Numbered from the stretch's first letter, positions 6,761-29,763 are shown. The stretch is DNA of 64,000 nt from Orbicella franksi (GCA_964199315.1 OZ116699.1:2232001-2296000); one strand, 5' to 3'. Numbers and translations are program-made. The notes: generated by a model from the sequence alone, not told the origin.

Positions 6761-8929
6761 GATCTCCCACGTTACACCGATAGTGACTTTAAAGAACTGG
6801 CCTTTTCAGTCAGGAATTGTAACTTTACAAGATATACACTTTAGCATTGCCAGATCAACGACAAACCGTAACAATTCCAATTTTATTTAGCAGAACAATT
6901 TTTTCGTGAATAATGATTTTTTGTTCATCTTGATTGTTAAGCATTGTTTTTAACACCTTTACGTCCCTCTGCAAGAGTTTATAGTTTCATTATTGCTCGT
7001 GCAGTTCCATTTTAATGATCACAATTGTATTTGCATTAAATACGCTAGAATTTATAATTTAGGTTTATCAGCGAATTAGCAGACTTCACTTTTAACAATA
7101 TTCGGTGAAGTAAAGTTTCGTACTGTTTAGTCATTATGTCATGCTACCCCCCCCCCCCCAAATCTAAATATATTCATCCGCGTGAAGCAATGCGACCGCG
7201 CTCGACAGGTGGCAAGTAAACCCCTATAACGATATGCCACTGTGCTCACGACAAGCGATAAATTGTCCAGGAATATCTGCGGCTTACAGGCTGCGGGAAA
7301 CTTTGTCGAAGGTTATTTAAAGAAAATTATCAGGAAACTCAGAGGAAAATGATTTTTTTTTCTATGCGAAAGAAGAACTTACGAATAAAAGAAAATGTTC
7401 TTATCATTCCACTTTAAAACAACCGGCGCCAAACTTACTACCTGTCTTTTGTTCCGTTATTCAAAAACATCAGCTAATAACTGCTTCGGGCAATTTGAAA
7501 GAAGACACCAACCTGTTTTTGTAATACCTTGTTTATATTTGCAGTACATTAGTATTGCCAGGCAATATCAGTGCTGCTGTAAAAAGGCTTACTCTTAGAT
7601 TTCGCTTTAACTCTAAAAATATGATATTTACAACTATTAGAACAATAAAAAGGGACAACATGTAACCAAGATCCGCTGTGTATCGTGAGAAAACTTTTTG
7701 ATACTGTTTATAAGAACATATTTTATAACAACATATCGAAGATGAAATTTGATAAATTCTAAGAATATTTTAATGATACACCTGAGGGTGCTGTTGGGAA
7801 TTTGAAAAGAATATGATTTTGTGTTTGGAAAATTTGTAAATACAATACTATGATCATATGTTTTAAACTAAACCGTATAAAATTCTTTCTTTCTTTAAAC
7901 TGCAAAACTAGCCAAAAAAAAAACAATCTCAGCACCAACTGCATGTTCGATGTTAATGACATTTCTGCAAGACGTTATGTGTGTCTATTCAGACTGAATT
8001 GTCTGAAGTCTACCTCCTAAATTATTTCAACGTCAATAAAATCATTATAGGATAGATAATCAGACGTTGTGTCAGCATAGTTCACTTTGTATTTCTTTGA
8101 ATAATCTTAGAATATCTACGAGAATATTTTTAGCCTATAATCGGCAGAAAAATAAGAATACTTGGACTGGGCCGGAAAAAGGTATTCTTGTTAAAAAAAG
8201 GAGTGAGGCCTTTTTCACCGTAAATTTTTCTTTTTTGCTTTGCTATAAAATTCAATGAAAATGCGAGGAAGGTTCAGATAGGACCTGTAAAATTACCAGA
8301 AATTGCCTCCGTTCACATATTATGATGCAAATAAGAAAAAATAATGGTGAAAAGGGCTATTATGCAAGGCAATGTTTACATGTTTTGATTATTTTGTCTT
8401 ATTTTGAGGCACTGAACTAAAACGTAGGTTAGGTTGAACTCAAAAATGAGTTAAATTTAATAAGTTGTGTTCCATATGTGAAAAATGCCTGGTCACCGTT
8501 ATGCATTTTTGTGCTAAATTCAGCTTTAAAACGATAACTTTAGTCATAAATAAAAGGCGATTTACCAAAGATGCCATTAGTTTATTAATTAAAAACAGAA
8601 AAATATTCATGTCACAGTTTTATTTTGTTATGTTTAACTTTATTAAATGCTGGAAAAAATTGAGAAATTAGTATTCTACAACCGAGACGAAAGCAAGCAC
8701 TGCAAGGAATTATTTTTGCGAATACCATTTATAGCAAAGCACGAGTTCCCACATTTGAATGGTATCGTGTTCCTAAGTGATACACTTTCCTGCACCTGCT
8801 ATCTCTCCGCAAACTTAGATCAACAGATGCTTAATTACGTCCTTATAATTATTCCACTTTAATTAAAACATTTATGCTTTCATCGCACTTTATCAAGCGT
8901 TCCTCTGTGAAGACAGAAAACTACAGAAC

Positions 8930-11704
8930 ATGCATCTCTGGATGCTAACCCTTGTCTGCACGACTGTGTACGGCATTAGCCGTATTTCACAGCCAGATTT
9001 GAAAGCTGTCAACTTTGCAAAAGCAATAGCGGGATATAAGCTCAATGGAAGAGTGATCAAGGAAATAGAAGTTGATTCCGAACTTTCATGTCAGCTTGCG
9101 TGTGTTGGTGAAGAGAAATGCCAGTCTTACAACTTTGGACCCACCAATGGCACAAATACTACAAAGAAAAACGCTGAAATATTCAGGTGTCAACTGAGCG
9201 ACTCAGATCGATTTGTTGGCTTTGCAAACTTCGCCAAAGATAAAGAGTTTATTTATAAAGAGCGCCAGGTAAAAATAAATTTCAATTTTTTAAAACATTT
9301 GAAATTTAACTTACAACCAAATGAATGGTCTTTCATGACTGCTAAGACCCTAAATTTCTACATAAAAACTTTGTCTTTAGGATGAATTGAACAAAATAAA
9401 ATCCATATCAAACAATATCAGGCAATTTAAGTAATATAGCTTTATTTCACTAAAAGGGGAAAGCAAGCTTCGCGCAGTGGGCTCCCATCCTATCAATGGG
9501 TCGAGTTTGTTCAGTTTGTCCTTCGGTTTTACTCCTTCCACAAAATCTGACATTTCTAAGTTTCAATTAGACCAAGCAATCAGAAAATACCGGAAGATCC
9601 AGCTTTCTTAGAGCATAATGATAACAGCGAAGGTAGCAAAACTAAAATATCAATAATTATTTTACACAGAGTGCCTGTGAGACGGACAGTTCCCCTTGTG
9701 GTGACAAAGGAATCTGCATCCCCAACTATCAAGATGACACCGTGCAATGCAAGTGCAATGATGGATTCATAGGAACGCCTTGCAGTACGTAAGAACTTGG
9801 CATGCAGGAATATAGTTTTTGAATAAGGAAATGACATTATTTATTTCTTGCTTTAACAGAGCCCATCAAAAGCTGTTCCAAACTCATTCAATTTGGTTTG
9901 ATATCCAGTGGCGTGTACCCAATTAGTCTAGATGGCGGCAAACCAATACAAGTGTTGTGTGACATGACCACGGATGCTGGAGGTTGGACAGTTTTTCAGC
10001 GACGTTTAGACGGCTCTGTTGACTTCTATCTTGGTTGGGAATCCTACAAAAACGGGTTTGGAGATCTGAACGGCGAGTTCTGGCTCGGAAACGACAATCT
10101 CCACCATCTGACAGCTACTGATGATGTCATACTGAGAGTTGACCTGGAAGACTTTGAAGGAAACATCAGATACGCTGAGTACACGACTTTTAAGGTGGCA
10201 GACGAGGCAGATAAGTACCGGCTTTTGATTGGAGGATACAATGGTACGGCTGGTGACTCGATGGCACTCCATAAGTAAGTAATATTTATGCATTTTCCGT
10301 ATATTACGAAGGATTCGTTTTGGGCAACTGTACACTTAGCTTTTAAGGTTGCTGGCAACAATTTTCAACTTTCAAGCAATAATACTTTGACTGGTCAATA
10401 TTACCACACTTTAACAAGTGATGGTATTACATTGATAGCAAACAATGGTTGTGGTCATCCTCTGGAAATAATAGGCTGCATAGCAACGATATAACCCGTT
10501 AACCCTTAATTTTACCTTTAAGTGCATATAATTCAAAGAAGGCTTGGTGAGGCCCATTTTTTATTATATCGAGTTGTGATAAGCATTCTAAAATACAACT
10601 TTTTTCCAACATTATGTCGATAGGTTTCAGACCCACGTTAAATTTTCGAAAGTTTGAAATGCCTCTGAAACTAACATTCTAAATTTTTGGAAGTTTTTGA
10701 ACTTTCTAGTTTACTCTTTGACTTAAATGTTGGCTCAGGTTTTCCTAAGTTTTTCTATTGTTTTTATTATTTTATTGTCATTATTATTGTTATTATTTTT
10801 CTCTCAGTTGAATTTAACTTTAGATATCCTATCTCCGTGGCTCTCATCATAAATAAATAAATTAATTTTTTTAAAAAAATCGGCTCTGCTTCGCTTCTTT
10901 AAAAATATACATGCTATATACAAGCGTTCGCGTCATTATGATTAGTTTTGTTTTAATTTGTCGAAGGAAAACATAGCTACATGTAGCTGCTTCCCAAGGG
11001 GCCGGCAATTTCAAAAGTGTTTTTTCACACAGCTAGATTTTAGTGTAAACTACATGAGGCAAGAGGAGTTACCCCTAAGCCAAAGTAACTTCTAATTAAT
11101 GGGAGAGTGGGCGAAAGTTGCTTAACTGTTGCCCACCGAGTGACATTTAGATCTAGCCATTGCCACCTTACTGTGCTTGAATCAGCCAATGAGAGCGCGC
11201 GTTAGATTCAACTAATGTCCAGCTAAATAACAAAAACAAATTGAATTCCATGTTAAAGCAGAAGTTCAGATAATGCTTTTAGTCGACACGATAAGTATTG
11301 CTTTCGATGATCCTCGTTGGTGGTTTGACTGTTTGTTTATTTGTTTGTTTGTTTGTTTGTTTGTTTTTTGTGTGTGTGTGTTGGTCACCCTGTATCTTGG
11401 TATGAATTTCACATATTGACAGGTGTGGTGTCCATGATGTAACATACAAACAATCTGTCATTTTTCTTTTAGTGGTATGCAGTTTTCTACGAAAGATAAC
11501 GACAATGACCAAGATAGTGGCCTCAACTGCTCACAAACATTCAAAGGAGCCTGGTGGTACTATCATTGCCATTCCTCCAATCTTAACGGCGTTTACCTTA
11601 ATGGTTCACATTCTTCTTATGCCGATGGCGTCGAATGGTCCACGTTCAGAGGTCTCCACTATTCTCTGAAACGCACAGAGATGAAAGTTAAAACCAAATT
11701 CTAG
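8930..11704 (+). CDS. Secreted PAN/Apple-EGF-fibrinogen C-terminal (FReD) protein, copy 1 (366 aa); exons 8930-9268, 9670-9784, 9860-10274, 11473-11704
   Basis: Signal-peptide-like N-terminus; PAN motif SCQLAC..KCQSYNF..CQLSDSD; 6-Cys EGF exon; FReD motifs [40 protein letters not shown]. All introns are GT-AG with matching phases 0/1/2; 1101 nt in total. Confidence 0.9.
9470..9572 (+). mobile_element. Degenerate SINE-like fragment in FReD intron 1 (paralogous copy ~25105-25240)
   Basis: Resembles from memory an abundant anthozoan SINE-type repeat (..GGGTTGAGTTTG..CTCCCTCCACAAAAACC..TTCAATT); no database check was possible. Confidence 0.4.
11331..11380. repeat. (GTTT)n plus (TG)n microsatellite in FReD intron 3 (degenerate paralogue ~27005-27068)
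   Basis: Read directly. Confidence 0.85.
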
Positions 11705-13690
11705 CTCTCTAGACCCAGGGTCATCCAACATTTCGGCACAAGAACAATTGTTTATTTAGAACCGCAATACTGTGGAACTTTCTTTTGGTAGCAAAGGCTA
11801 GTCTGGCTTACTACTTTGGATGAGTATCTAGTATTTATAACTGTAGCAAATTGTTTCATTTATTGTGTTCATTATTTATAATATTTTGTTTTCGGAATAC
11901 ATTACGCGATTTTAGAGAAGGCAAGCTCTTGCACACGAAGTGGATTGAGACGTAAACATTTTTAAAGAGCAGTACACACGATGCGACTTTGAAAATTCAC
12001 GTCATTTTGTCCTGCTTCATGAAATACGAATTCAAACAAGCTAAGTTACAGCATTTTGTGGGGACAAAACTGTGTCCCAACAACAGAACTTTTTCGGAAA
12101 AACGGCCATGTCACAAGAGGGAAATTTTTGCTGCAACATGTCCTCGCACCATGTTACCTAGCGTGTGTACCGGCCATTCACTGTCTTGCTCACGAATGCA
12201 ACTCAATGTCCTATATAAGCTAGGGTTTGAGTCACTTGCTCCATCCGAAGTACTCATCACAGTAACCGTTAGACCAGCACCAGGTAGGGAGGGTGTCGAG
12301 AAAGAGAGCAGGGCGAGATCCCTCCCCCCAACCCTTCTACCTGCTCCTACTTACTCCTTCCCGTCCCGCCCTCAATTTACTGGAGTGGAGGGGTACATCG
12401 TAATTTTCGCTGGATTGCCAGCGATGAACTTTGCAATGAAAAGATAAGGTCCCAGATTGGTTTCTAATTAGTGTTCGGCAAACGCAACTCGTGCTTAAAC
12501 TTTTCTAATGCATTGGAACTTAGTCCAGAATTAACTCAGAACTTAATTTGCGTTTTTGAATTTTGTAAGTGGGCAACGTATGAACTTTATGTTTATATAC
12601 TGTATGTAAAGGTTTCTTAAGTATAGAGTAATGGAAATACATATTTTAAACGTAGTAATATATACTGTAGTCTTAACAAGAATACTGGAAGCAGTGCCAG
12701 TATCGTAAAGTACGTTAACTGTTTTTGTATTGTTTAACTAGTGCAAGGTGAATGTACTTTAAGCAATAAAGAAAAAACTTAGTCCAGTCGTTTTTTCCGT
12801 TCATTTCTACACTTAAAACAGCAAACCGCTTAGAGGTTCTGGATTGGGATGTTGGAATTTCAGTTATCAAAATAACTTTGCGCGAATTTTTAACTTCGGT
12901 TAGCGTTTCAGCCCAAGTCTCAGCTTTTAGCGATATTTTCAAATCTCGGACCTCAGCTGTTTCTCAGTTGTTTCCCAGCTGAAGGTTAAAGTTTTGATCA
13001 GCTCACAGCTATCAGCAAAACATCAATTCAGAACCGCTATACTCTAATCTCGACAATAATTTATCAGTTATCTACTCGCGAAGTGAGCCCCTCTTCATCG
13101 GAGAAATAAAGACCAAGTAATATATACGGATACCATTTTTCATGAGACCTGTCGAGCAACACTGTTGCACTGCCAAATTGGCTCTCGTTACCTTTTATCG
13201 ATTATTGTCATTTAAATGATTTCTTACTCGAGTGTTGGGAAGCCTTTGCCTCCCACAGCGGCCTTAGAGCGAACACGCGGCAAACAGTCGCCATGTTTGT
13301 TGTAGTTTTTACCGTTGTGCTGCGGGTTTCCAAAAGCTGCTACATAATGTAAGTTCTTTAGCCGGAAAGAAAAGACAATTCAGTGTTTGAAAATCAGTTA
13401 TCTTTGGTAATTGCTCGCGTAATCTTTCTTTTTAGCGAATCGCGTACAAAGTTCAGAAGTGTATGTGGATCAATCTTGATCTCGATTGTCGGAGTTTGTA
13501 AATAAATTCTGTTTTGAGACTACATTGGCAAGCGTCGTTGCCTGTAGCGGCCGGCAAGACAAGCTGTAGGACATATTGAGAGAGGAAGAAATGATTTTAC
13601 ACATGCGCAGTACAATCTACGTCGCAAAGTCTATTATATAACAAAGGCTGACCGGCGGATCTTCGCGCGTTAACCAAGCATTCCTGTTTA

Positions 13691-14102
13691 GGACCTGTTT
13701 ACAAGGAGAGAGGGTTACCCTAGCGAGCGGGTTACCCTAGCACTCAAACATTTCCTCTTTTTTTCTGCGTCGTGTTTACAAGGCAGCCAGAGTTACCCGG
13801 GTAGGCGGGTTACCCTGTCTGCGTGCTAGGGTTACCCTGGCAGGCGTGTTAACTTTCTCCCTTGTAAACACTCCAGTCCACTCCACTCCACTCCACTCCA
13901 CTCCAGTCAACATGCCCGCCCAGGTTAACTAACTAATTGTTTCCAGACCCTTTGAGTGTAACCGGGTATTTAATTGTCCCGGGTTGTCGGGTTACCCTAC
14001 CAGTGAAATTTTGCTTGCAATTGTATACCCGGGCTATCTTCTGCCCTCCAGCTATTGTTAACCCACTTGCTAGGGTAGACCTCTCTCCTTGTAAACAGGC
14101 CC
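13691..14102. mobile_element. PIF/Harbinger-type MITE (412 bp) with TTA TSD and an internal (CTCCA)n tract
   Basis: GGACCTGTTTACAAGGAGAGAGG... pairs with ...CCTCTCTCCTTGTAAACAGGCCC (imperfect TIR of ~45 bp); TTA at 13688-13690 and 14103-14105. Confidence 0.85.
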
Positions 14103-14814
14103 TTAGTATTTCTTCAGACGCTATCAGTTCCTGTGGCTGTCATGTACACAGCAAGGTTTGCCGTGAGCAACAAAGTACTTCAAAAACAGAACCGCTATAA
14201 TTATCACTGATATTTGTAGTCAGTAATATTCAGATGTTTCACGGTCATCTGCCCTCAATTTGCAACAGCGAACGAGCAATCAAAGTGGCATTTTCATTTG
14301 AGTGTCAAAATTCGGAATTTCTTTTGCGACACACATGCAATGTTACACTCCATATTAAATGGCATAACTTCTTAAAACTGTCTTACGAAAAAATGATATT
14401 AGAAGAAAAGGCGTGGAAATATATTTGACAGATTGTGGAGCCATTTTGGATGGAGAGATTCGGCGCCAACACGGCGAAAATAATTCCAAATGAAATCGTG
14501 TGCAATTTGACTGCTAAAGCTTAAATATAAGGCAATTGAGACGAACATAAAACGTAATTAAAAAATCGTTTTCTTTCTTTTTCTCTAGTTAGTTTGCTTT
14601 GTTTTCATAACGTAGTTTTAATTCTTCTTTTTCAGCGATCTCACGTAGTTTCTGTTTGCTATTGGGACAACAAATACAAGATAAGTTATGATTTTTAACT
14701 TTGTTGTGATCGGTTATCATCGGTTAATTGAATGAACGTTCAAGCGGGGTGAGGCTGCAATCGAATTGGCCACTGTAACATAACTGCAATGTCATCCTGT
14801 ATACTTTGGCCTAT

Positions 14815-15262
14815 CCCGGGAGGGGAGTACTCCCAGAAAATTGGGTGGGGGTGTGCGGCCCGCTTCCTAAAATCCTACCCTATTTATGACCAAAATCTGC
14901 GATTTATGACCTGACAAAAAAAAAAATTGGATTCCCGGCTGGCGAAGTTGCCCTAAACATAGTTTATGAAGAGCTCTCGTTGATCGTTCTTATCGATAAA
15001 GGTGAAAAAGGAGCTTCTTCTAATAAAAAAAAAAAACATACCCAATTCAAGACTAGAGTGCTAAAACCATATAATTTGGTTTTAACAACTGGGTTGATAA
15101 TGTGAATTGGCCATCGTAAAGAGATTCGAAAACCATGCCCTATTTATGACCAAAACGGCCCAAATCTATGCCCTGTTTATGACCAAGACGGCTGAAAAAC
15201 CATACCCTTTGGGGTCGCACATGCCTATATAGCCCATATAAGGGAGTACCCCCCACCCCCCG
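14815..15262. mobile_element. MITE-like repeat with G-rich/C-rich ends (CCCGGG..GTACTCCC / GGGAGTAC..CCCG) and internal CCCTATTTATGACC repeats
   Basis: Inverted termini and repeated subterminal motif seen; paralogous copy at ~30893-31333. Confidence 0.7.
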
Positions 15263-16697
15263 TGGCAAATTTAGTGATGATCACTACAACCTTTTTTCCT
15301 ACATAACTATAAAGTAGTTCTGTTCTTTTCTATTGACGTTAAGATTTCTATGCTTGCTCATCTGTTACCTCAAGATCTTTGCTATCACCGTGACCTTTGT
15401 GCAGGGTTTTTTCTCAGTTATGTCGCCCTGGTTTGTCCGTCTCAAACTGAAGTTTAAATATAAACAGCCTGCAACAGTCAGAAGTAAACTGTATGTTATC
15501 AGTGTATACTCTTCGACGTTTAGCAAATATATTCATCGAACCACCATTAATTGGGTGTATAGCTGTTAAAACAACTGCGGAAAAGTTTGCATAACTTCTG
15601 CGGAAAATTAAAGGCCGATTTAAAGTGCGCGAAACACTATTTAGGCTCATGGGAACATTGCTTTATTTTTTCCTCTTTTTTTCAAAATTTTCAAAATTAA
15701 GTGAAGACGTAATTTATAAATTCAAGAACAACAGAGAAGATGATCCCATGTTTTCTTGATGACAAAGATAACGTAACTGTATGATTTGGTAAGGGCATTG
15801 GTTAAGCCTGCAAATAATCAATTTGTAGAAAACATTAAAACTCTCTTAGTGATCGAACAGGAAATACCGGAAATACATTTGTAACGTAGGTGTGCAAGAT
15901 ATCAGTTGCTCAATCATTTTACGAAAAATATCAAAACTGTCCTGGCAATCGATCATAAAATACCGGAAACGCCATCATAACTGCATGAGCCTGTCGAGAT
16001 CTGCAAATAATCAGTTACTAAGGTCGTGAAAACGATCTGAGTTCTTTATTTAGCTTTCCTCAGCTTTTTGAGTGAAATTTTGAGTGAGGCGATTTTTCAA
16101 AAGTTCACTAGCTTTGTTTTGACGATTAATTCTGTCAGCTGGTTAAATGAATAATAGCATGTATCACAAAAGAGGATAAAAAGTTCTAAATTATAATTAC
16201 TATTTTCATAAAATGAAAACATTGCACAAATGATTGGCAAACCGCCGTTTCAGCTTTGAACGGCTTTCAAACGGAAAAAAAACACTTTGAGATACATATG
16301 TTGAGCAGATTTCCTAATTTCTTTTTTTTTTTCTTTTAATTATTATTATTATTTATTTAAAAGAGCGACATTGAGATTAGCAGAAAAGGAAGCCAATAGC
16401 TCTATCCTTAACCCTTAATAACCGGTTCCAAAGTTTAAACAAAGCATTTTAATTTTGGGCAATCCTGGGGCTATTGAGTGTACGTGTTAAGCCGTCAACA
16501 ACAGCCAGGCTTATTTTCCTTTGAAACGAGTGTATAATCTAAAATAAATTGGCTTTCAAACCTCCCTTTTAAATACAAAAAAATTCAAAGCATTTGAAAC
16601 AAAATAGCAAAGATAAAATGACATAACACATGGTTGATTTTAACCGTCTAAATCTGCGACGCATTCATGACAACAATTGTAGCACGATAAGGAAGTA

Positions 16698-16826
16698 GAA
16701 CTTTCTTTTGGTAGCAAAGGCCAGTCTACGTTACTATTTTGGATGGGTATCTATTATTTATAACTGTAGCAAACTGTTTCATTTATTTTGTGCATTATTT
16801 ATGATATTAGTTCAAAATACATTACG
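16698..16826 (+). pseudogene. Orphan fragment of a FReD 3' UTR (remnant of a lost paralogue)
   Basis: GAACTTTCTTTTGGTAGCAAAGG...AATACATTACG aligns to 11775-~11906 downstream of the copy 1 stop codon, with no coding exon upstream. Confidence 0.75.
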
Positions 16827-17184
16827 TTGTGGTAAGGAAGGCTGCGTGCCCGGAGTCAGAGGCCTGGGTTTGTATTCCATAAGTCTCGGAGTCTGTCTGC
16901 CGGTCTGATCAGTGACTACATTGGCGCTACAAGATTTCTAATACGATGCTCCTTATTTCATCTTTTTCATCGCTGATACTGACCTGTAAACATGCCGAGG
17001 GAAGTTTTCTTTCTGCGCTCACTCTTTCTCATTTGCGTGTCTTCCTTTGCACTTGTCGCCAGTCCCTTTTCCATTCACATCAGCTACATCCTAGGTGGTT
17101 TGATGAGTGTGGTATGTTGCGTGCTGGAATCCTACGGTAAGGGAGTGGCTGAGACAAACCTGGTTTTGTAGCATGAAACGAATA

Positions 17185-17480
17185 GTATTACTGCTACTCC
17201 CCCCTGGATCTGATGATAGTCCACGCATGCAGTGTTATCCCCAGCATCAGGAGCCAATGGGTTATGAGTTCCTGCCAGCATTTAATTCCCTGGTAGTTAT
17301 TTCTATATAGGGGTAGACTGAGGCATTGTAAGAACCTAGGTTTGCACTCACTAGGACCATGTTGCGGGCACGTGAAGTGGGGAGAAACCCTTTCGTGTAA
17401 ACGCATAGGAAGCATGCTATTGTTGCAGGGACGGTATACGCACACGAAGCAGAGGCATAAAATTTTGGAAGAGTAGTGCA
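17185..17480. repeat. SINE-containing segment paralogous to the FReD copy 2 downstream flank (~22490-22760)
   Basis: Shared blocks CCTGCCAGCATTTAATTCCCTGGTAG, GGTAGACTGAGGCA and GGAGAAACCCTTTCGTGTA extend past the SINE portion. Confidence 0.7.
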
Positions 17481-17969
17481 CACGATATGACGTTGGAAGT
17501 TTAGGTCATTTAGTCACTGCCTCATCACGGACGAATTTAAATTAAACCAGCTAAATTTTATGCAAAATTTTGCGGCCGTAGAAATACTTTTGTTTTGGCA
17601 TAAAAGTGCACATTAGTGCAACATGCCTTTGCGCGCAACATGTCACCTGGAGTGTGTGCAGGCCATTAACTGTCTTTTAGATCTTAGTACTATAGATTGT
17701 ACATATCTTTATTCCCCAGGGCCCCTATGGATACCAGCCTCGTTGCTACCCTGGTTAAATAAAGTGACTTACTTTGCAGTGAAAAGATAAAAAGAATGTT
17801 TAAGGTCATTCCCCAGTATTGCATTGCGCATCCCTACTGCGCATTATTTCACGCGTGATTAGCGCGCGCGCATTAAAAAATGGCGGCTTTTTTACGGCTG
17901 GACCTTGCCATACAGGTAAATCGTCATTTTCGAGCAAACGAGTATGGTGACCTATCACCATATTACTAA

Positions 17970-17994
17970 AACGCACAGAGATGAAAGTTAAAAA
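17970..17994 (+). pseudogene. 25-nt remnant of the FReD last-exon end (KRTEMKVK)
   Basis: AAACGCACAGAGATGAAAGTTAAAA is identical to the sequence just before the stop codons of copies 1 and 3. Confidence 0.7.
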
Positions 17995-18423
17995 TGGAGT
18001 CCAAATCTTTGGATTTAGTCAAGAGTAAATCAACTCTGACTTGACAAGAGACCAATTATTTAACGCTGACATCCGAAAAGTGCTTAAGTTGATCCATCCA
18101 ATATTTTAGATCAACAGTAAACGTAAGGCTGGCCTTTACCGCTTAGTGACACTTCGTATATAGTATTTCGAACAATTTTCCTTTGGAAATACGTCCATCC
18201 AGTGCAGTTTTATTATTTAAGAAAAAACTCAAGACCTTCCGTTTTACTAAATTTATTAAGAGTAACTCTTTATCATATTTTTAGGTATTTTCCTAGTTCT
18301 TTTTTCTTTTTCTTTTTTTTTTAATTTTCAAAGTTTCTTAGAGTAAAATTGTAGTTTTGATGGATAGTTTTGTAAAGCGTCTCGGGCAAATAATGGATGT
18401 GTAGGCTATATAAATGAACTATT

Positions 18424-18442
18424 ATTATAATTATCATCATCA

Positions 18443-18473
<31 letters not shown>
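18424..18473. repeat. (CAT)/(ATT)n trinucleotide microsatellite
   Basis: Read directly. Confidence 0.9.
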
Positions 18474-18476
<3 letters not shown>

Positions 18477-18902
18477 CAAGTGCAAAGAAATTCCGTTTTA
18501 AATTTTCTGTATTAAAAATAACATCATTTAGAAAAGTCTCTTATCAAGAGGATTAATGATGCTTATTTCTATGGAAACTGACTGTTATGGGAACTGGACC
18601 AGGCCAAGCTTTTAATGTTTTCATATGAAGATCTAGATCTGGATACGACGATGTTTTTAATTTGTGATTTTAATTCGTCTGAGTAACTTTCAATTCCCCA
18701 CTGATTGCCATGCAAAGCGTTTGAAAGTTAACACCTTCGAAAATATACAAATTAAAAAACTGTCATAACAAAATTCAGATCACCTTATGACAACTCTAAG
18801 TTAATAACTATAATCAATAATTAATGCTAGTCACAGAGTTATGTCCAGCTCTAGTCACCAAATGCATAAGATCCCTATCAAAGCAAAATCTAAGAGCAGG
18901 AC

Positions 18903-21900
18903 ATGTATCTACAGTGGCTTCTAGCCTATGTAATCATTACTTCTACAAACGGATTAACAAAAATGATAACGCCAAACTTCAAAGCTGTTAACTTTGCTAA
19001 AGAAATAAGAGAACGAAGACTCAATGGAAGCGTTATTAGAGAAATAGAGGTAGAGTCGGAGGGTTCTTGTCGACTGCAATGTATGGAAGAGACTGGCTAT
19101 CTGTCGTATAACTTTGGATTCAAAGAAAAAAATAGGAACAAATTCAAGTGTCAACTGAGCAACTCTGATCGATTTGTTTGCTTGAAGAATTTCACAAAGG
19201 ATCATGAATTTCTCTACAGAGGAATAAAGGTAATTTTTTTTTAAAGGTATAAAACTGCACTGAAACATCGGAGAATTGAACGTGTTTGTGTTCTAACATA
19301 TTTTCAGTCCCAAGGAAAACTATGAAAGAAATGTTACTCCGTATGTGTATTTAAACACTATGTATACAGCATGTATATTTTTCAAGCTTTCAAAGCTCAA
19401 ACTTTCTCTTTTTAATCTATTATCAAAAAACATTTGTCCAATTATTAATATTTCATAATGACATATCTTTCGATTTAAAAATCTCTTTGTTTCCAGCCTC
19501 CACAATGATATTGTATAGTGAGCTGTTTTTGTCAATCCGGAAATACATAATAGTGTTTTCGTTTCGCGTCATCAAAATTTTATAATCTGAAGCGCCCTTA
19601 ATTTGATTGCTGATTGGCTCGGCATTGTTAATCTTCGCTCAAAACTTTTCCTGCAAACGTTTATTCCTGCTTTTACTTTCATTCATTTAATACTTTGATC
19701 AGATGATACTCAGTTTGTGACACAGATGACAAGCCATTTACGGAACACGCAAACAGCTGTTAATTACAGGGGCTATGTAAAATCGTTATAATTCTGCCGA
19801 TGAGCTTCGAGGAAAATATAATTGAAAGCTGTTTTGTTTATTATAGTTCAAATATTTTTCGCAACACGTGGGATCTGTTGAAAATGTGGAAATATCACTC
19901 GGATATTCCTCGATTTTAGGGGAGCTCCAGCCTGCGCGCCGAAAGTGCTTGAGCGGAGCACCATTTGGTAACCCATCGAACTAAAAAGGTTTGGTTTTCA
20001 CGTGATTGTCCGTAAGCCCCTTCAGGTTAGTCAATGTGAAATGTCACACTTTGCAACAGCCTCGTTCCTAGGGCTTTTGCCATAGAGTTTGGTAGGGCCG
20101 GGTTTACAGATAATTGATGGATTATCAATTGTGGTAGTCTGTAGTTTCGCTTGAATAAATTCCAGCGTATTCTTGCTGGTGACAAAAAATGTGGAAAATC
20201 CTTAGGACGGAGCTCTTTTTAACTGGGTTACCTTTTCTGAAAACAGAGCGGTTGTGAGACAGGCGGTTCTCCTTGTGATGACAATGAAGTCTGCATCCCT
20301 AACTATGAAGAAAACAGAGCAAACTGCTTATGCAGAGAGGGCTACATCGGAAAACCATGCGGTAAGCTAAGTGTCTTTATATAATTGACTCGATTAATTG
20401 ATTACTTGATTAGCTATTTATAAACAGAAAACAACACAAAAGTAGAACGTTTCAAGCTGTTATAAAACCTGATGATTTCTGTTCAAAGTTACAACATTTT
20501 ACTTGACTGACATGTACCTTTGGCTGTTGGGGTCCGGTGAATTCTTGGGGAACAGACTACTCCTCCACCCAGGTGTGTAAATGGATACCAGCAAATTAAA
20601 TACTGGGGAGTTACCCTGCGGGGGGAGTGGAAACACTCCTAGTCACTTCGAGCTAGGCTCCAGCTGTATGGACCATTTGGCCTGAAGAAAGCTTTAATAC
20701 TTATACTTTTGTTTATCATTCTTGAAAAGAGAAGCTGCTGAAATTTGCCTTTAAATCCTTAAGATCCGCAAAATTACAACAGAAGAATTGTAGCGGCAAA
20801 ACTGGCAGCACTTACTAAGCCAACATGCCATATTTCATTAATTATTTCTGTTATCTATCAAAGCCGATTGTTAAAAGTTGCTCCCAACTCCTTCAAGATG
20901 GTTTCACATCCAGTGGCGTGTACACAATCAATCCAGATGGCGGCAAACCAATACAAGTGTTGTGTGACATGACCACGGACGGTGGACGTTGGACAGTTTT
21001 TCAGAGACGTTTAGACGGCTCTGTTGACTTCTATCTTGGTTGGGAATCCTACAAAAACGGGTTTGGAGATCTGAACGGAGAGTTCTGGCTTGGAAACGAC
21101 AATCTCCACCGTTTGACAGCCACTGATGACGTCATACTGAGAGTTGACCTGGAGGACTTTGACGGCAACAAAACATACGCTGAGTACACGACTTTTAAGG
21201 TGGCAAACGAGGCAGACAAGTACCGACTTTTGATTGGAGGATACAGTGGCACGGCGGGTGAATCTATGACATACCACAGGTAACAGAAATAATAATTGAG
21301 CAGTTAATGCATCGTTTTTTAAAAACAGTCATATTAGTATTCTGCTAGTTATTCGAAGACACTAGTTTAACATCTGTTTACATTATACATTATAATATAC
21401 ACGGCTAGTAAGTAAGTGCATGTAAGTGATTTGATGACCGTGATAAAAAAGGCGAAGGGTTAATTTGGCAACAGTTATTTATTAACATTTGGGTGAATTT
21501 TTTTCCTTTTTTTTAATTCTGTGTGAGAATAGAATTGGTGATATGATGACGTAATAGAAATAGGTTTAAAAAAGAAATGTTTATCTATTATAATGTGCAC
21601 AACTGGTAAATAAGTAAGTAACTCTGTGACATAAGGAGAGACACCGTCGGCACACGACTCGCTAATGAGAGCAACCAAGTCAGAAAGACAATAGGTGACT
21701 CACTTGACGACTCTGGCTGCTAACATTGAGCTTAGTTTTATCGTTGGATTAAGGGTTTGCTAAGGGTTTAACATTTGATTCCTTAAGGTGCGTGTTGGCA
21801 CACACTCTGGGAAGATGAAAAGGGGGGGGACGATAAGAAGGGACAAGCTCCTTCGTATGGACACATAGGACGCAAGTTACAGGGACAGTACGCAAGCTGC

Positions 21901-22286
21901 TGCAGACGAAGTGGACATTGGTTCATTTCTAATTTGTAGCGTGAACAGTTTGCAAGAGCACTGCATTGCAGTGCGCACGATGCAACGCTTAAAACTGAGG
22001 TCCCTGCTTCATGACGCAGGACTTCAAAGCAAGTTTTTAATCGTTACTTTCTTTTAGTGGTATGCAGTTTTCTACGAAAGATAAAGACAATGACCAAGCT
22101 AATGACAGCTGCGCACAAAATTTTAAAGGAGCCTGGTGGTACAGTGGTTGTCATAGCTCCAATCTTAACGGTTTATATCTGAAAGGACCACATTCTTCTC
22201 ATGCCGATGGCGTCAATTGGCGTGCGTTTAGAGGTATCAACTATTCTCTAAAAAACACTGCGATGAAGGTTAAAACCAAATCATGA
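18903..22286 (+). CDS. PAN/Apple-EGF-FReD protein, copy 2 (divergent, possibly pseudogenising); exons 18903-19229, 20247-20361, 20862(?)-21279, 22058-22286
   Basis: Same domain order, intron phases and 115-nt EGF exon as copies 1 and 3. The homologous exon 3 acceptor reads CAA (20859-20861) rather than CAG, so the exon 3 start is uncertain. Confidence 0.75.
20530..20697 (+). mobile_element. Degenerate SINE fragment in FReD copy 2 intron 2
   Basis: CTCCACCCAGGTGTGTAAATGGATACCAGCAAATTAAATACTGGGG matches the core of the repeat at ~53297-53525. Confidence 0.55.
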
Positions 22287-23755
22287 ATCTCTGGACCTAC
22301 GGTCATCCAACATTCCAACAAGATCGAGAACAATTATCCCAATAGCAGCAGTTGTTTCAAATTTTATCTTTTCAAAATGACTGCAAAGGATAATCGACAA
22401 ACCGGAAAAACGCCATGAAGTTCTGAGTTCTAGACTAAGTTCAGGTGTTTTTTAGTTAAATTAGTTTAGCTGGTGTGAACGGGCCATAGCATTACTGCTA
22501 TCCCCCTTCCCACCCCACCCCACCCCTTGATGGGATAATAGTCCATTGAAGTGTTATCCCCAGAATCAGGAACCAGTGGGTCACGAGCTCCTGCCAGCAT
22601 TTAATTCCCTGGTAGCTATTTCTTAATATGGGTAGACTGAGGCACTGTAAGAACTGAAATTTTCACACACCAGGCTCATGTTGTGGTGACGTGAAGCGCG
22701 GAGAAACCCTTTCGTGTATACGCATCGGACGCGTGTTATTTTTGAGGAGACAGTACATAAGCAGGTGCACACAAAGTGCATAGTCATGAAAAACAATTAA
22801 AGGAAGCTTGTGGATACCTGCTGCTTATCGTTAAGGAGGAAAACAACATTTTGTTTCATTCTTGCACGCATGGTATAAAGAAATAATATTGCAACGATGA
22901 TTAACTACGGTTTTCGTGATGATTTATAATTGTTAAGTTTTGTTAGCTTTCGATTAAAAATGATCCAAATCCTTATTTCCTTTCGTACCAGAAAGATACT
23001 GCTCCTATTTAACAGTATTTGACGCCGCTGGCGTCTTATTTTCAACGCTCTTCTCGGTGTTTGGCATGGAGACCTGCTCAAACACGGTCTTTTGTGTCTG
23101 ATATATCACTTAAAAAAGCAAAATTGCAGTGATCCAAGGAAAGAGTATTGTTTACCACTAAGGTAAAATACCTCAGCTGGACCGAAACTGTGATAATAAT
23201 AATGATGATAATAATAATATAGCTGTCGACAGTATATCATAGATCAAACTCATATCGATGTTTAAAAAGATGAGCGTTGTCTAAAAGTATACACCTAGGG
23301 ACAAAACGATCTACTAAATATAAAGCTAATAGAAATTCATATTGATAATTTACAGTTGGCCAGTTTCAAAGGATAACAAACTGAAAGTATTACACCCTTA
23401 TTAAATGTGACTACCACCTTTAATTCTTCACAAGCATAAAAAAACAAGTCCGTTATTGTTCCATTTAACTTCATTCTTTTGAAAGTTTCAAAATTTGGCT
23501 TTTTTAAGTTTTAATCCTGGTATTAAAGGCGTGAAAACTTATAACTTTTCTTTTGAAGAGAAGAAATAAGAATATTTTATAAAGATGCCGTCATTAATAG
23601 AAGCAGCACATAACTCCCTCGAAATAAGACACCGCTACCTTTTTGTGGTAAGCTGGTTATAGTTGCAGTGCATTGTTGATATTAGATAAATTCCGTGCTC
23701 TAACTAGGCTCACTCTGGGAATACGACTTTTCACAACAATAACAAGTTCGATGTC

Positions 23756-23966
23756 GGTCCAAACATTTGTAGTTCTTCTGGTTATGTGCGCGTCTCTAGT
23801 ATAAAGACGGGCACAAGACGTATTATGCGTCTAGACGAACTATCTCTCGTATTGCGTCGCTCAAGACGCATTTCGAAGGATAGCTCGTCTAAACCCATAA
23901 TACGTCTTGTTTTGTGCCTGTCTTAAACTAAAGACGCATAACCAGACGAACTTCAAATGTTTGTCC
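23756..23966. repeat. Long imperfect inverted repeat (foldback/MITE-like), ~90-bp arms
   Basis: AAACATTTG..TCTGGTTATG..AAGACGTATTATG..TAGACGAACTATC pairs with GATAGCTCGTCTA..CATAATACGTCTT..CATAACCAGA..CAAATGTTT. Confidence 0.8.
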
Positions 23967-24571
23967 AAGTTCGTCCAGACGGTTGATGAGTCTTTAGTAC
24001 AAAAACGGAGAGGAGGCATTATCCTTCTGTACGGATAATACGTCCTCTACTATAAAAAGGCCATTCACTTTTACAGCCATGAGAGTAAGAGAAAAGGCAA
24101 AACATACACCAAGCTCTGCTGCGTAACATGAGAAGACTTTTAATTTTAATTATGAAACGTTTTCCTACTCTATCTGTCAATAATGCAAGGCGTAGTATTG
24201 ACAGTGTTTAATTAGTGAGCCTTCTAAGTTAAATAAGGGAAAATTCGCTCAAGCTTTCGTTAGCTCGACAATTAAAAATAGAAAAATATTCAACATTTCT
24301 TTCATTGCGCTTGACTATATTAAACATTGCCAAATGAGGAAATACGCATCTTACAACCAGGACGAAAGCAATCCCTGCAAGGCAAGAATAGCTACCATTT
24401 GTAACGTAACACAAGCTCACATTTTAAAAGTTCCGTGTTCTTAAGTTATTTTGATGAAACACTTTCCAGCACCTGCTACCTCTTAGTAACCTGTTTACGC
24501 ACTCATTCCATTTTCATTAAAACATTTACACTTTCATCACACTTTATCAAACCTTCCTGTGACGAAAGAAC

Positions 24572-27388
24572 ATGTATCTCTGGATGCTAACCCTTGTCTG
24601 CACGACTGTGTACGGTATTAGCCGTATTTCACAGCCAGATTTGAAAGCTGTCAACTTCGCAAAAGCGATAGCGGGATACAAGCTCAATGGAAGCGTAATC
24701 AAGGAAATAGAAGTGGATACGGAACGTTCATGTCAGGTTGCGTGTGTCAGTGAAGAGACGTGCCAGTCTTACAACTTTGGACCCACCAATGGCACAAATA
24801 CTGCAAAGAAAAACGCTGAAAGATTCGTGTGTCAACTGAGCGACTCGGATCGATTCGTTGGTTTTGCAAACTTCGCCAAAGATAAAGACTTCATTTATAA
24901 AGGACGCCAGGTAAAGTTAAAATTCAAATAATATTGTAAATTTAACAAGAATGAATGCATGGTCTTTCATGATTGCTAAGACCCTAAATTTCTTCATAAA
25001 AACTTCAAACTTTTAAGATGAATCGAACAAAATGAAATGCACATTAAACAAAATCAAACACTTTAAGAGATATGGCTTCATTTCACTTAAACGGGTAAGC
25101 GAGGATCACGCAGTGGATTCGAATCCGATAAGTGGATTGAGTTTGCTCAGTTTGTTCTCGCCTTGCTCAGAGGGTTACTTCTGGGTTCTTTGCTTCTACT
25201 CCCTCCACAAAAACCAATTCTTCTAAATTTCAATTGGACCTAACAGTTAGGAAATAGCTGAAGATCCAGTTTTCTGAAAGGATAATGATAACATCGATTG
25301 AAGCAAGACTAAAATATCAATAATTATTTCACACAGAGTGCCTGTGAGACGGACAGTTCTCCTTGTGGTGACAAAGAAATCTGCATCCCCAACTATCAAA
25401 ATGACACCGTGCAATGCAAGTGCAAAGATGGCTTCATGAGAAAGCCTTGCAGTACGTAAAAACATTTGACATAGTGGAATTCAACTTTTGGATAAGGAAA
25501 TAAGATAATTTATTTCTTGCTTTAACAGAACCCCAGAGCTGTGCCAAACTTCTCCAAATTGGTTTCACATCCAATGGCGTGTACACAATCAATCCAGATG
25601 GCGGCAAACCAATACAAGTGTTGTGTGACATGGTCACGGACGGTGGAGGTTGGACAGTTTTTCAGAGACGTTTGGACGGTTCTGTTGACTTCTATCTTGG
25701 TTGGGAATCCTACAAAAACGGGTTTGGAGATCTGAACGGCGAGTTCTGGCTTGGAAACGACAATCTCCACCATCTGACAGCTACTGATGATGTCATACTG
25801 AGAGTTGACCTGGAAGACTTTGAAGGAAACATCAGATACGCTGAGTACACGACTTTTAAGGTGGCAGACGAGGCAGATAAGTACCGACTTTTGATTGGAG
25901 GATATAGTGGCACGGCTGGTGACTCGATGGCAGGGGCAGGCCATAAGTAAGAGTAATATTTAAGCATTTTCCGTATTATTACGAATGATTCGTTTTGGGC
26001 GACTGTACACTTCGCTTTTAAGGCTAGTGGCAACAGTTTCCAGCACTTTTCCAGCAGTAATACTTTGACTGGTCAATATTACCACACTTTAACAAGTGAT
26101 GGTATTACATTGATAGCAAACAATGGTTGTGGTCATCCTCTGGAAATAATAGGCTGCATAGCAACGATATAACCCGTTAACCCTTAATTTTACCTTTAAG
26201 TGCATATAATTCAAAGAAGGCTTGGTGAGGCCCATTTTTTATTATATCGAGTTGTGATAAGCATTCTAAAATACAACTTTTTTCCAACATTATGTCGATA
26301 GGTTTCAGACCCACGTTAAATTTTCGAAAGTCTGAAATGTCTCTGAAACTAACATTCTAAATTTTTGGAAGTTTTTGAACTTTCTAGTTTACTCTTTGAC
26401 TTAAATGTTGGCTCAGGTTTTCCTAAGTTTTTCTGTTGTTTTTATTATTTTATTGTCATTATTATTGTTATTATTTTTCTCTCAGTTGAATTTAACTTTA
26501 GATATCCTATCTCCGTGGCTCTCATCATAAATAAATAAATTAATTTTTTTTAAAAAAATCGCCTCAGTCTGCTTCGCTTCTTTAAAAATATACATGCTAT
26601 ATACAAGTGTTCGCGCCATTACAGTTAGTTTTGTTTTAATCTGTCGAAGGAATACAGAGCTACATGTAGCTGCTTCCCAAGGGGCCAGTAATTTTAAAAT
26701 TGTATTCTCAGAAAGCTAAATTTTAGTGTAAACTAATGAGGCAATAGGAGTTACCCCTAAGCCAAAGTAACCTCTGGTTAATGGGAGAGTGGGCGAAAGT
26801 TGCTTAACTGTTGCTCACCGAGCGACATTCAGAGTTAGCCATTGCCACCTTACCGTGCTTGAATCAGCCAATAAGAGCGCGCGTTAGAATCAACTTATGT
26901 CCAGTTAAAACAAAAAAACCAGTTGAATTCCATGTTAAAGCAGAAGTTCAGATAATGCTTCTAGTCGACACGATAAGTATTGCTTTCGATGATCCTCGTT
27001 GGTGGTTTGATTGTTTGTTTATTTGTTTCTTTGTTTCCTTGTTTGTTTCTTTGTTTGTGTTTGTGTGTTGGTCACCTTGTATCTTGGTATGAATTTCACA
27101 TATTGACAGATGTGCTGTTCATGATATAACATACAAACAATCTGTCATTTTTCTTTTAGTGGTATGCAGTTTTCTACGAAAGATAACGACAATGACAAGG
27201 ATACTGGCAGTTGCTCACAAACGTACAAAGGAGCCTGGTGGTACTATAAATGCCATTCCTCCAATCTTAACGGCGTTTACCTTAATGGTTCACATTCTTC
27301 TTATGCCGATGGCGTCGAATGGTACACGTTCAGAGGTTACCACTATTCTCTGAAACGCACAGAGATGAAAGTTAAAACCAAATTCTAA
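24572..27388 (+). CDS. Secreted PAN/Apple-EGF-FReD protein, copy 3 (366 aa); exons 24572-24910, 25337-25451, 25529-25946, 27160-27388
   Basis: Same motifs as copy 1; GT-AG introns with consistent phases; 1101-nt open spliced frame. Confidence 0.9.
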
Positions 27389-29351
27389 CTCTCTGGACGC
27401 AGGGTCATCCAACATTTCGACGCAAGAACAATTGTTTATTTGGAACCGCAATAGCGTGGAACTTTCTTTTGGTAGCAAAGGCTAGTCTAGTATTTATAAC
27501 TGTAGTAAATTGTTTCATTTATTGTGTTCATTATTTATAATATTTTGTTTTCGGAATACATTACGCGATTTTAGAGAAGGCTGCGCAAGCTCTTGCACAC
27601 GAAGCGGATTGAGACATAAACATTTTTAAAGAGCAGTACACACGATGCGACTTTGAAAATTCACGTCATTTTGTCCTGCTTCATGACTTACGAATTCAAA
27701 CAAGCTACACTGCACCATTTTGTGGGGACAAAACTGTGTCCCAACAACAGAACTTTTTCGGAAAAACGGGCATGTCACAAGAAGAACATTTTTACTTCAA
27801 CATGTCCTCGCACCATGTTACCTAGCGTGTGTACCGGCCATTCACTGTCTTGCTCACGAACGCAACTCAATGTCCTATATAAGCTAGGGTTTGAGTCACT
27901 TGCTCCATCCGAAGTACTCATCACAGTAACCGTTAGAACAGCACCAGGTAGGGAGGGTGTCGAGAAAGAGAGCAAGGCGAGATCCCTCCCCCCAACCCTT
28001 CTTCCTGCTGCTAGTTACTCCTTCCCGTCCCGCCCTCAATTTACTGGAGTGGAGGGGTATATCGTAATTTTCGCTGGATTGCCAAATGACTTTGCAATGA
28101 AAAGATAAGGTCCCAGATTGGTTTCTAATTAGTGTTCGGCAAACGCAACTCGTGCTTAAACTTTTCTAATGCATTGGAACTTAGTCCAGAATTAACTCAG
28201 AACTTAACTTGCGTTTTTGAATTTTGTAAGTGGGCAAGGTATGAACTTTATGTTTATATACTGTATGTAAAGGTTTCTTAAGTATAGAGTAATGGAAATA
28301 CATATTTTAAACGTAGTAATATATACTGTAGTCTTAACAAGAGTACTGAAAGCAGTGCCAGTATCGTGAAGTACGTTAACTGTTTTTGTATTGTTTAACT
28401 AGTGCAAGGTGTATGTACTTTAAGCAATAAAGAAAAAACTTAGTCCAGTCGTTTTTTCCGTTCGTTTCTACACTTAAAAGAGCAAACCGCTTAGAGGTTC
28501 TGGATTGGGATGTTGGAATTTCAGTTATCAAAATAATCTTGCGCGAATTTTTAACTTCGGTTAGCGTTTCAGCCCAAGTCTCAGCTTTTAGTGATATTTT
28601 CAAATCTCGAACCTCAGCTGTTTCTCAGTTGTTTCCCTGCTGAAGGTTAAAGTTTTGATCAACTCACAGCTATCAGCAAAACATCAATTCAGAACCGCTA
28701 TACTCTAATCTCGACAATAATTTATCAGTTATCTACTTGCGAAGTGAGCCCCTTTTCATCGGAGAAATAAAGACCAAGTAATATATACGGGTACCATTTT
28801 TCATGAGACCTGTCGAGCAACACTGTTGCACTGCCAAATTGGCTCTCGTTACCTTTTATCGATTATTGTCATTTAAATGATTTCTTACTCGAGTGTTGGG
28901 AAGCCTTTGCCTCCCACAGCGGCCTTAGAGCGAACACGCGGGAAACAGTCGCCATGTTTGTTGTAGTTTTTACCGTTGTGCTGCGGGTTTCCAAAAGCTC
29001 CTACATAATGTAAGTTCTTTAGCCGGAAAGAAAAGACAATTCAGTGTTTGAAAATCAGTTATCTTTGGTAATTGCTCGCGTAATCTTTCTTTTTAGCGAA
29101 TCGCGTACAAAGTTCAGAAGTGTGTGTGGATCAATCTTGATCTCGATTGTCGGAGTTTGTAAATAAATTCTGTTTTGAGACTACATTGGCAAGCGTCGTT
29201 GCCTGTAGCGGCCGGCAAGACAAGCTGTAGGACATATTGAGAGAGGAAGAAATGATTTTACACATGCGCAGTACAATCTACGTCGCAAAGTCTATTATAT
29301 AAGAAAGGCTGACCGGCGGATCTTCGCGCGTTAACCAAGCATTCCTGTTTA

Positions 29352-29763
29352 GGACCTGTTTACAAGGGGAGAGGGTTACCCTAGCAAGCGGGTTACCCTA
29401 GCACTCAAACATTTCCTCTTTTTTTCTGCGTCGTGTTTATAAGGCAGCCAGAGTTACCCAGGTAGGCGGGTTACCCTGTCTGCGTGTTAGGGTTACCCTG
29501 GCAGGCGTGTTAACTTTCTCCCGTGTAAACACTCCACTCCACTCCACTCCACTCCACTCCACTCCAGTTAACATGCCTACCCAGGTTAACTAACTAATTG
29601 TTTCCAGACCCTTTGAGTGTAACCGCGCATTTAATTGTCCCGCGTTGTAGGGTTACCCTACCTGTGAAATTTTGCTTGCGATTGTAAACCCGGGCTATCT
29701 TCTGCCCTCCAGCTATTGTTAACCCACTTGCTAGGGTAGACCTCTCTCCTTGTAAACAGGCCC
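29352..29763. mobile_element. PIF/Harbinger-type MITE, duplicated copy of 13691-14102
   Basis: Same TIRs, TTA TSD and flanks. Confidence 0.85.

Follow-up and report, generated by a model that had tools for sequence, protein, structure and literature searches.

The fibrinogen-related domain (FReD) and its ligand-binding S1 pocket are best described in tachylectin-5A (TL5A, 1JC9) from the horseshoe crab, in human FIBCD1 (4M7F) and in the ficolins. In FIBCD1, the pocket consists of Tyr405, His415, Tyr431 and Trp443 with Ala432 at its base; the oxygen of the acetyl group is held by the backbone NH groups of Cys414 and His415, both positioned by a cis Asn413-Cys414 bond, the hydroxyl of Tyr431 touches the acetamide nitrogen, and Asp393 and Asp395 coordinate calcium (PMC3908420). 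An extended site comprises the sub-sites S1(2) and S1(3), and replacement of a pocket residue can inactivate S1, as L-ficolin shows (PMC10825690). Invertebrate FREP families, known from snail, mosquito, oyster and scallop, combine expanded tandem FReD genes with variable N-terminal modules and TL5A pocket residues that are not conserved; this last argument has been made for a scallop FREP (PMC11741071). Here we describe three genes (copies 1, 2 and 3) in a 64,000-nucleotide stretch of the coral Orbicella franksi (G000:C2:2232001-2296000 of a 497-Mb assembly; the window), which encode PAN-EGF-FReD proteins and resemble these families. The best-supported conclusion is that the ligand-contact surface has diversified among the paralogues, as in other invertebrate FREP families.

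ORF (open reading frame) listing, three-frame translation and splice-site inspection yielded three plus-strand genes of four exons each, in line with the three paralogues noted in a preliminary description of the window. Their products of 366, 362 and 366 aa for copies 1, 2 and 3, respectively, share one order of domains, with a signal-peptide-like N-terminus followed by PAN, EGF and FReD. In the copies scanned, Pfam assigned PAN_1 to exon 1, EGF to exon 2 and Fibrinogen_C (PF00147) to exons 3 and 4, with E-values of 9e-50 to 7e-52 over profile positions 2-137 for exon 3 and of 1e-22 to 2e-24 over positions 148-220 for exon 4. The EGF-family matches fell under the gathering cut-offs (E ~3e-4 in copy 1), a common outcome when just one EGF of 38 residues is present. 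The splice borders of copies 1 and 3 are clean GT/AG throughout. Judging from their N-termini, the three proteins are predicted to be secreted.

The domains upstream of the FReD set these proteins apart from their structural relatives. TL5A lacks the PAN-EGF stalk, and FIBCD1 sits in the membrane as a type II protein and contains a coiled-coil region. We found no collagen match or Gly-X-Y run in the 362-366 aa, all of which are taken up by the signal-like N-terminus and the PAN, EGF and FReD domains. The coral proteins are thus not ficolins, and lacking a collagen stalk they offer nothing on which MASP binding or activation of complement could rest. Snail FREPs carry one or two immunoglobulin superfamily (IgSF) domains upstream of the FReD. 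The coral proteins have PAN-EGF at this place, in contrast to the IgSF or coiled-coil modules of FREPs; the upstream exons of the coral genes matched PAN_1 and EGF only in Pfam, and no IgSF domain was found. The coral proteins are therefore not snail-type FREPs either; as the preliminary description had it, PAN-EGF stands in place of Ig or collagen N-termini.

We then compared the last exons with the solved structures. Their best matches were TL5A, FIBCD1 and ficolins 1 and 2, TL5A being the best or second-best match and FIBCD1 the top match for copy 1 with the same S1 pocket logic. Alignment with TL5A 189-260, FIBCD1 and ficolin-1 revealed no gaps across the pocket segment; the sole indel is one extra residue of copy 1 in the 201-205 loop, upstream of this segment. 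Further upstream, in exon 3, copy 3 has a 2-residue insertion adjoining the loop equivalent to TL5A Arg186/His187, and the coral copies carry Leu, Tyr or Gly in place of Arg186. The FIBCD1 pocket corresponds to Tyr210, His220, Tyr236, Tyr248, Ala237 and Arg218-Cys219 of TL5A, whose numbering we use throughout, and the calcium ligands Asp393/Asp395 correspond to TL5A 198/200. Read directly from the codons (positions 210, 218, 219, 220, 236, 237 and 248), the pocket is F/H/C/H/Y/A/L in copy 1, F/G/C/H/H/A/I in copy 2 and Y/K/C/H/Y/A/Y in copy 3. Copy 3 is identical to TL5A at all wall residues (Tyr210, His220, Tyr236, Ala237 and Tyr248). Scored against a putative TL5A-type wall set (aromatic 210, His220, Tyr236, Ala237 and aromatic 248), copy 3 agrees at five of five positions, copy 1 at four and copy 2 at three. 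The deviating residues are Leu248 in copy 1 and His236 together with Ile248 in copy 2, and the residue preceding Cys219, where the cis-peptide bond would lie, is His, Gly and Lys in copies 1, 2 and 3, respectively.

D198, D200, C206, C219 and H220 are kept in all three copies and nearly throughout the family, and the coral copies have the calcium aspartates and the Cys206-Cys219 pair in common with TL5A. An Asn to Lys exchange in the calcium loop of copy 2 affects a non-ligand position, and both ligand aspartates are present in every copy. The preliminary description had aligned the last exons without gaps to M-ficolin from F274 to Y312 and had read positions 274/282/284/300/312 as F/H/H/Y/L, F/G/H/H/I and Y/K/H/Y/Y in copies 1, 2 and 3. 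Our alignments to FCN1 and TL5A and the codon readings bear this out, as they do the retention of the Cys-His pair and the calcium loop noted there, DNDND in copies 1 and 3 and DKDND in copy 2. The M-ficolin numbering used there agrees with the published Asp282-Cys283 and His284 (PMC6379837), and the FCN1 row F...DCH...YA...Y fits F274, Y300 and Y312.

By analogy with TL5A, FIBCD1 and M-ficolin, the last exon would build the S1 site. The Cys-His pair would bind the ligand carbonyl through its backbone NH groups, with the side chains at positions 210, 220, 236, 237 and 248 lining the pocket and those at 201, 203, 217 and 218 contributing the adjoining sub-sites. Copy 3, with its full TL5A pocket, is predicted to bind acetyl groups such as that of N-acetylglucosamine (GlcNAc). 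The pocket of copy 1, with Phe210 and Leu248, should be altered but still hydrophobic. As His236 takes the place of Tyr in copy 2, this copy is without the hydroxyl that contacts the acetamide nitrogen in FIBCD1; together with Ile248, this has probably changed or abolished its acetyl specificity. Diversified binding within the trio is plausible.

The contrast between a steady scaffold and variable contacts extends to the wider family. Across the last exons of 18 non-redundant paralogues, Cys219 and the calcium ligand Asp198 are invariant and His220 (15/18) and Ala237 (16/18) nearly so; the most variable columns are 221, 243, 218, 248, 201 and 249. From the two FIBCD1 papers we compiled nine contact positions, namely 210, 220, 236, 237 and 248 for S1(1), 201, 217 and 218 for S1(2)/S1(3), and 203 as the equivalent of Glu398. 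They had a mean entropy of 2.03 bits, the exon one of 0.97 (permutation p = 5e-4); the same test gave p = 0.014 for the five positions named in the preliminary description and p = 0.12 for the five core walls alone. The sub-sites S1(2)/S1(3) of FIBCD1 employ positions that are hypervariable in the coral family. Parsimony counts on the exon-4 tree gave 79.5 nonsynonymous to 19.5 synonymous changes at contact positions (omega, the dN/dS ratio, 0.94) and 207.6 to 174.4 in the rest of the exon (omega 0.30; Fisher p = 2e-6). As had been proposed for the pocket walls of the trio, the ligand-contact positions are far more variable than the scaffold, in the trio and in the family alike.

Copies 1 and 3 lie in two units of a tandem segmental duplication, which are 84.5% identical in their first 670 bp and 94-96% identical thereafter (self-blastn). 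The mismatch rate between the units is 21% upstream and in intron 1, 17% in intron 2, 5.6% in intron 3, 5.7% in exon 4 and 2.8% downstream. Since it falls to 2.8-5.7% there, the 3' half of the two genes is young and recently homogenised. Within exon 4, five of the seven amino-acid differences between copies 1 and 3 fall on the nine contact positions (hypergeometric p = 1.4e-4), seven of the eight changed codons alter the residue, and four of the changed contact codons differ at two bases each (random placement p = 3e-4). For this pair, dN/dS is 0.34 over the whole gene; exon 4, which carries 9 non-synonymous and 3 synonymous changes, reaches 0.73 and thus stays below 1. Clustered double-hit contact codons in a young background need either short conversion patches from paralogues or selection. 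Over the same gene pairs, the median dS is 0.37 for exon 3 and 1.03 for exon 4, with an omega of ~0.2 in both; because omega is equal in the two exons, the diversity of exon 4 reflects older, un-homogenised sequence and not a higher overall omega. The introns of copy 2 are unalignable to those of copies 1 and 3, yet exon 3 is still 91-93% identical, and it looks as if exon 3 has been homogenised by gene conversion. Within the duplication, copies 1 and 3 are each closely followed by an ORF of ~151 aa that matches nothing in Pfam and is probably non-coding or a repeat. A dispersed ~235-bp repeat with 82% identity between its two occurrences lies between the genes and looks like an interspersed element.

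The window is part of a larger array. A last-exon query identified at least 150 FReD last exons in the genome, ~20 of them clustered around the window at C2 2.10-2.51 Mb. A PAN-exon query returned 17 close PAN exons (E < 1e-20) beside FReD exons on C2, C1 and C9, together with further divergent ones. The genome holds at least 23 PAN-FReD loci. We retrieved 20 further loci and placed their exons by tblastn; 17 are intact and three broken. The broken ones, L031, L032 and L033, form an inverted mirror of the window trio on the minus strand at C2 2.471-2.486 Mb (G000:C2:2471100-2486100): exon 4 of L031 is interrupted by a stop at the codon equivalent to Tyr217, L032 has an exon 3 frameshift, and L033 a frameshifted PAN exon with exons 2-3 absent. 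These broken mirror copies fit a family that gains and loses genes. L044 (G000:C2:2135500-2138900) and L047 (G000:C2:2442500-2446400) encode an identical last-exon peptide with very different PAN exons, and so do L048 and L049, which points to last-exon exchange or recent segmental duplication between remote regions of the cluster. In L042 (L042:1766-1903) and L044 (L044:1736-1873), the real exon 3 is preceded by additional fragments of FReD exon 3 that are similar to exon 3 of L043 and are probably leftovers of unequal recombination. Shared last exons and extra exon-3 pieces are signs of unequal recombination and exon exchange.

Taken together, we hold with moderate confidence that the genes encode secreted, Ca-dependent FReD lectins on a PAN-EGF stalk, members of a family in tandem arrays that expands through duplication and in which some copies decay. 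Recombination among paralogues would homogenise exon 3 and the flanking DNA, and the contact codons of exon 4 would remain different, resulting in a germline repertoire of binding sites. A more far-reaching version, which we put forward only tentatively and consider unlikely, is a germline cassette system in which recombination unifies the scaffold exon and its flanks and swaps last exons among PAN front ends, selection keeps or renews differences at the contact codons only, and dozens of sites tell symbionts, commensals and pathogens apart. The preliminary description had seen in the trio a candidate recognition system and a secreted lectin-like family with different glycan specificities. The three genes are real, but they are only a sample of the loci counted above. 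The lectin-like family is supported by the PAN-EGF-FReD architecture, the intact calcium site and Cys-His pair, the predicted secretion and the variable contacts; its different glycan specificities are presumptive.

Several observations weigh against this interpretation. The signal-peptide type of the N-termini is a by-eye call on short hydrophobic stretches, and none of the three proteins has a stalk of a kind known to oligomerise or to recruit effectors, such as collagen or a coiled coil. Lectin activity, differences in ligand and a role in the recognition of microbes or symbionts are read from sequence comparison and thus presumptive. The contact set was picked after the entropy table had been seen, and the entropies are without correction for solvent exposure. 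Furthermore, the pooled omega at contact sites is about neutral, and in a per-site analysis of nonsynonymous excess (parsimony counts, binomial) no site was significant for omega > 1, the best uncorrected value being p = 0.08 at position 243. As no single site is significant, we claim no positive selection, and relaxed constraint on an exposed surface would account just as well for the variability of the neutral-like contact sites. The proteins would then have one common FReD function, for example an MFAP4-like role in extracellular matrix or adhesion, or generic acetyl binding, and positions in the loops at the pocket rim would drift, making the different pocket versions functionally meaningless. 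The name 'microfibril-associated glycoprotein 4-like' given to relatives by NCBI would suit such a function, and even the closest cross-species pair, copy 2 and the Oculina protein P0249 (80% identity), differs at pocket positions. General decay, however, would hardly leave Cys219, His220, Ala237 and the calcium aspartates nearly invariant amid varying neighbours, which is a selective pattern; nor does it readily explain that the differences between copies 1 and 3 cluster as double hits in contact codons on a homogenised background, or that the copy 2 pocket F/G/H/H/I recurs unchanged in its mirror paralogue L033 and in the database protein P0222 (95% last exon). We consider relaxed constraint a possible, though rather unlikely, explanation.

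The remaining adverse points concern copy 2 and expression. In the reference, copy 2 has an intron 2 (20362-20861) with the ends GT..AA, with CAA where copies 1 and 3 have the acceptor CAG, and we initially took this copy for a splice-site pseudogene. This view was downgraded to an alternative because RNA uses the homologous junction in frame: a contig of the polyA RNA run X3 joins 19229-20247, 20361-20862 and 21279-22058, spanning all three introns. Copy 2 is thus expressed as RNA whose splicing at the homologous junctions preserves the frame, and either an A/G allele at 20861 in the RNA donor or true GT-AA splicing may explain the reference sequence. In the PAN domain of copy 2, the third conserved Cys is replaced by Tyr and a new Cys (Gly to Cys) occurs ~28 residues downstream; its closest paralogues, L033 and L042-L044, retain the ancestral cysteine pattern, so the change could be disulfide re-pairing or decay. 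The RNA contig depth in X3 is low for copy 2 (15-20 compared with 228-243 for copy 3 exon 1). The GT..AA intron, the missing PAN Cys and the His at the Tyr236 equivalent are signs of drift in copy 2. Together with the low depth and the clearly broken mirror copy L033, they would also suit a transcribed gene on its way to becoming a pseudogene, in which case the locus would hold only two working pocket versions. Given the open 362-aa product joined in frame, FReD exons free of stops and frameshifts, the same pocket kept in P0222 and the canonical AG allele that the RNA donor may carry, we regard decay of copy 2 as improbable. In one read mapping, the copy 2 exons showed no excess of variants, no search aimed at somatic diversification having been made. 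Exon 1 of copy 3 is additionally covered by raw reads of RNA run X24 (only 19 reads in total). For copy 1, a share of 0.30-0.38 of the 31-mers sampled occurs in polyA RNA contigs of several studies, with exons making up 0.40 of the span, which is no more than suggestive of expression. Copies 2 and 3 thus have direct RNA evidence, copy 1 only indirect evidence.

Annotated full-length proteins with PAN (+EGF) and Fibrinogen_C, 340-370 aa in length, are found in Pocillopora verrucosa, P. meandrina, Stylophora pistillata, Oculina patagonica (many), Orbicella faveolata, Acropora, Montipora and Porites, under automatic names such as 'ficolin-2-like' and 'MFAP4-like'. Re-checking of database PAN-FReD proteins with Pfam revealed PAN_1 followed by Fibrinogen_C in ~350 aa, an architecture that the window proteins share. 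A PAN-FReD family is already annotated in many corals, and the trio adds to a known, FREP-like kind of invertebrate lectin; our literature search on coral PAN/apple-domain FReD proteins found nothing specific to the coral family. The window proteins are 67-80% identical to their annotated coral relatives. With an Oculina protein, copy 2 shares 80% identity, more than the 67% that it shares with copies 1 and 3, which indicates that the two lineages are old. For copies 1 and 3, we found no 1:1 orthologues with the same pocket; the last exons that match them best in the database are only 82-87% identical and carry other pocket residues. In the proteins of other corals, the Cys-His pair and Ala are kept, and there is wide variation at positions 210, 218, 236 and 248. 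Among the ESM Atlas clusters that combine PAN_1 with Fibrinogen_C, cnidarian sequences are the most frequent, but such clusters also occur in Mollusca; the architecture is thus not special to corals. PAN was not found in the sampled matches, one each, from a sea anemone, an octocoral, a crinoid, amphioxus and an oyster. Stylophora relatives are named 'Ryncolin-1', and cnidarian venom transcriptome and proteome papers report ryncolin-like FReD proteins, which would fit nematocyst or venom components; components of the skeletal matrix belong to the same alternative to recognition lectins. As these names are automatic, and as the conserved calcium site and Cys-His acetyl-binding core suggest ligand binding of the TL5A/FIBCD1 type, we judge this very improbable.

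The positions of all features are listed in Table 1. Two intronless rhodopsin-family G-protein-coupled receptor (GPCR) ORFs flank the lectin genes, and the window also contains a 308-aa ORF matching DUF829 and a 729-aa ORF without a Pfam match. Two runs of N are followed by a stretch that resembles a tandem repeat.

Table 1. Features of the Orbicella franksi window, with positions counted from its first nucleotide.
Feature	Position	Strand	Evidence
Copy 1 exon 1, signal-peptide-like N-terminus and PAN	8930..9268	+	ATG ORF to GT donor; PAN_1 E = 5.3e-9
Copy 1 exon 2, EGF-like	9670..9784	+	AG/GT borders, phase 1; EGF-family Pfam E ~3e-4
Copy 1 exon 3, FReD subdomains A and B	9860..10274	+	Fibrinogen_C E = 9e-50, profile 3-136
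Copy 1 exon 4, FReD P subdomain, calcium site and S1 pocket	11473..11704	+	Fibrinogen_C E = 1e-22; PDB alignments
Copy 1 exon 4 pocket codons	F 11540-42, H 11564-66, C 11567-69, H 11570-72, Y 11618-20, A 11621-23, L 11654-56	+	
Copy 2 exon 1, PAN	18903..19229	+	PAN_1 E = 1.1e-4; RNA joint 19229 to 20247
Copy 2 exon 2, EGF-like	20247..20361	+	EGF matches; RNA joints on both sides
Copy 2 exon 3, FReD A and B	20862..21279	+	Fibrinogen_C E = 7e-52; RNA joint 20361 to 20862
Copy 2 exon 4, P subdomain	22058..22286	+	Fibrinogen_C E = 1.1e-23; RNA joint 21279 to 22058
Copy 2 exon 4 pocket codons	F 22122-24, G 22146-48, C 22149-51, H 22152-54, H 22200-02, A 22203-05, I 22236-38	+	
Copy 3 exon 1, signal-peptide-like N-terminus and PAN	24572..24910	+	PAN_1 E = 1.1e-9; RNA depth 228-243
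Copy 3 exon 2, EGF-like	25337..25451	+	Homologous GT/AG borders giving open 366-aa frame; 84% identity with copy 1 EGF exon
Copy 3 exon 3, FReD A and B	25529..25946	+	Copy 1/copy 3 alignment; tblastn
Copy 3 exon 4, P subdomain, complete TL5A-type pocket	27160..27388	+	Fibrinogen_C E = 2.4e-24; TL5A 189-260 gapless, E = 1.1e-28
Copy 3 exon 4 pocket codons	Y 27224-26, K 27248-50, C 27251-53, H 27254-56, Y 27302-04, A 27305-07, Y 27338-40	+	
Tandem segmental duplication unit 1, holding copy 1	8851..16696		Self-blastn against 24505-32767
Tandem segmental duplication unit 2, holding copy 3	24505..32767		Self-blastn against 8851-16696
ORF of ~151 aa downstream of copy 1	11989-12447		No Pfam match
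ORF of ~151 aa downstream of copy 3	27653-28108		No Pfam match
Dispersed ~235-bp repeat	17201-17436 and 22523-22755		82% identity
Rhodopsin-family GPCR ORF	2255-3244	+	7tm_1 E = 3e-44
Rhodopsin-family GPCR ORF	34816-35946	-	7tm_1 E = 3e-42
ORF of 308 aa	50786-51712	-	DUF829 E = 8e-42
ORF of 729 aa	59035-61224	-	No Pfam match
Runs of N	6149-6340 and 6352-6481		
Tandem-repeat-like stretch	6482-6762		Self-match 82-87%

To our knowledge, corals have no adaptive immunity and sort symbionts from pathogens by germline receptors, and we know of few candidate coral receptor families for which residue-level predictions exist. The trio offers a simple comparison between a complete TL5A pocket (copy 3), a pocket with one changed wall (copy 1) and a pocket without the acetamide-contacting Tyr (copy 2). 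If these differences are neutral, the locus would merely represent one more expanded lectin family. The mosaic of a homogenised scaffold exon, an old and diverse last exon, and contact codons that differ on a young background provides a concrete population-genetic hypothesis, which may be addressed with existing coral resequencing data.

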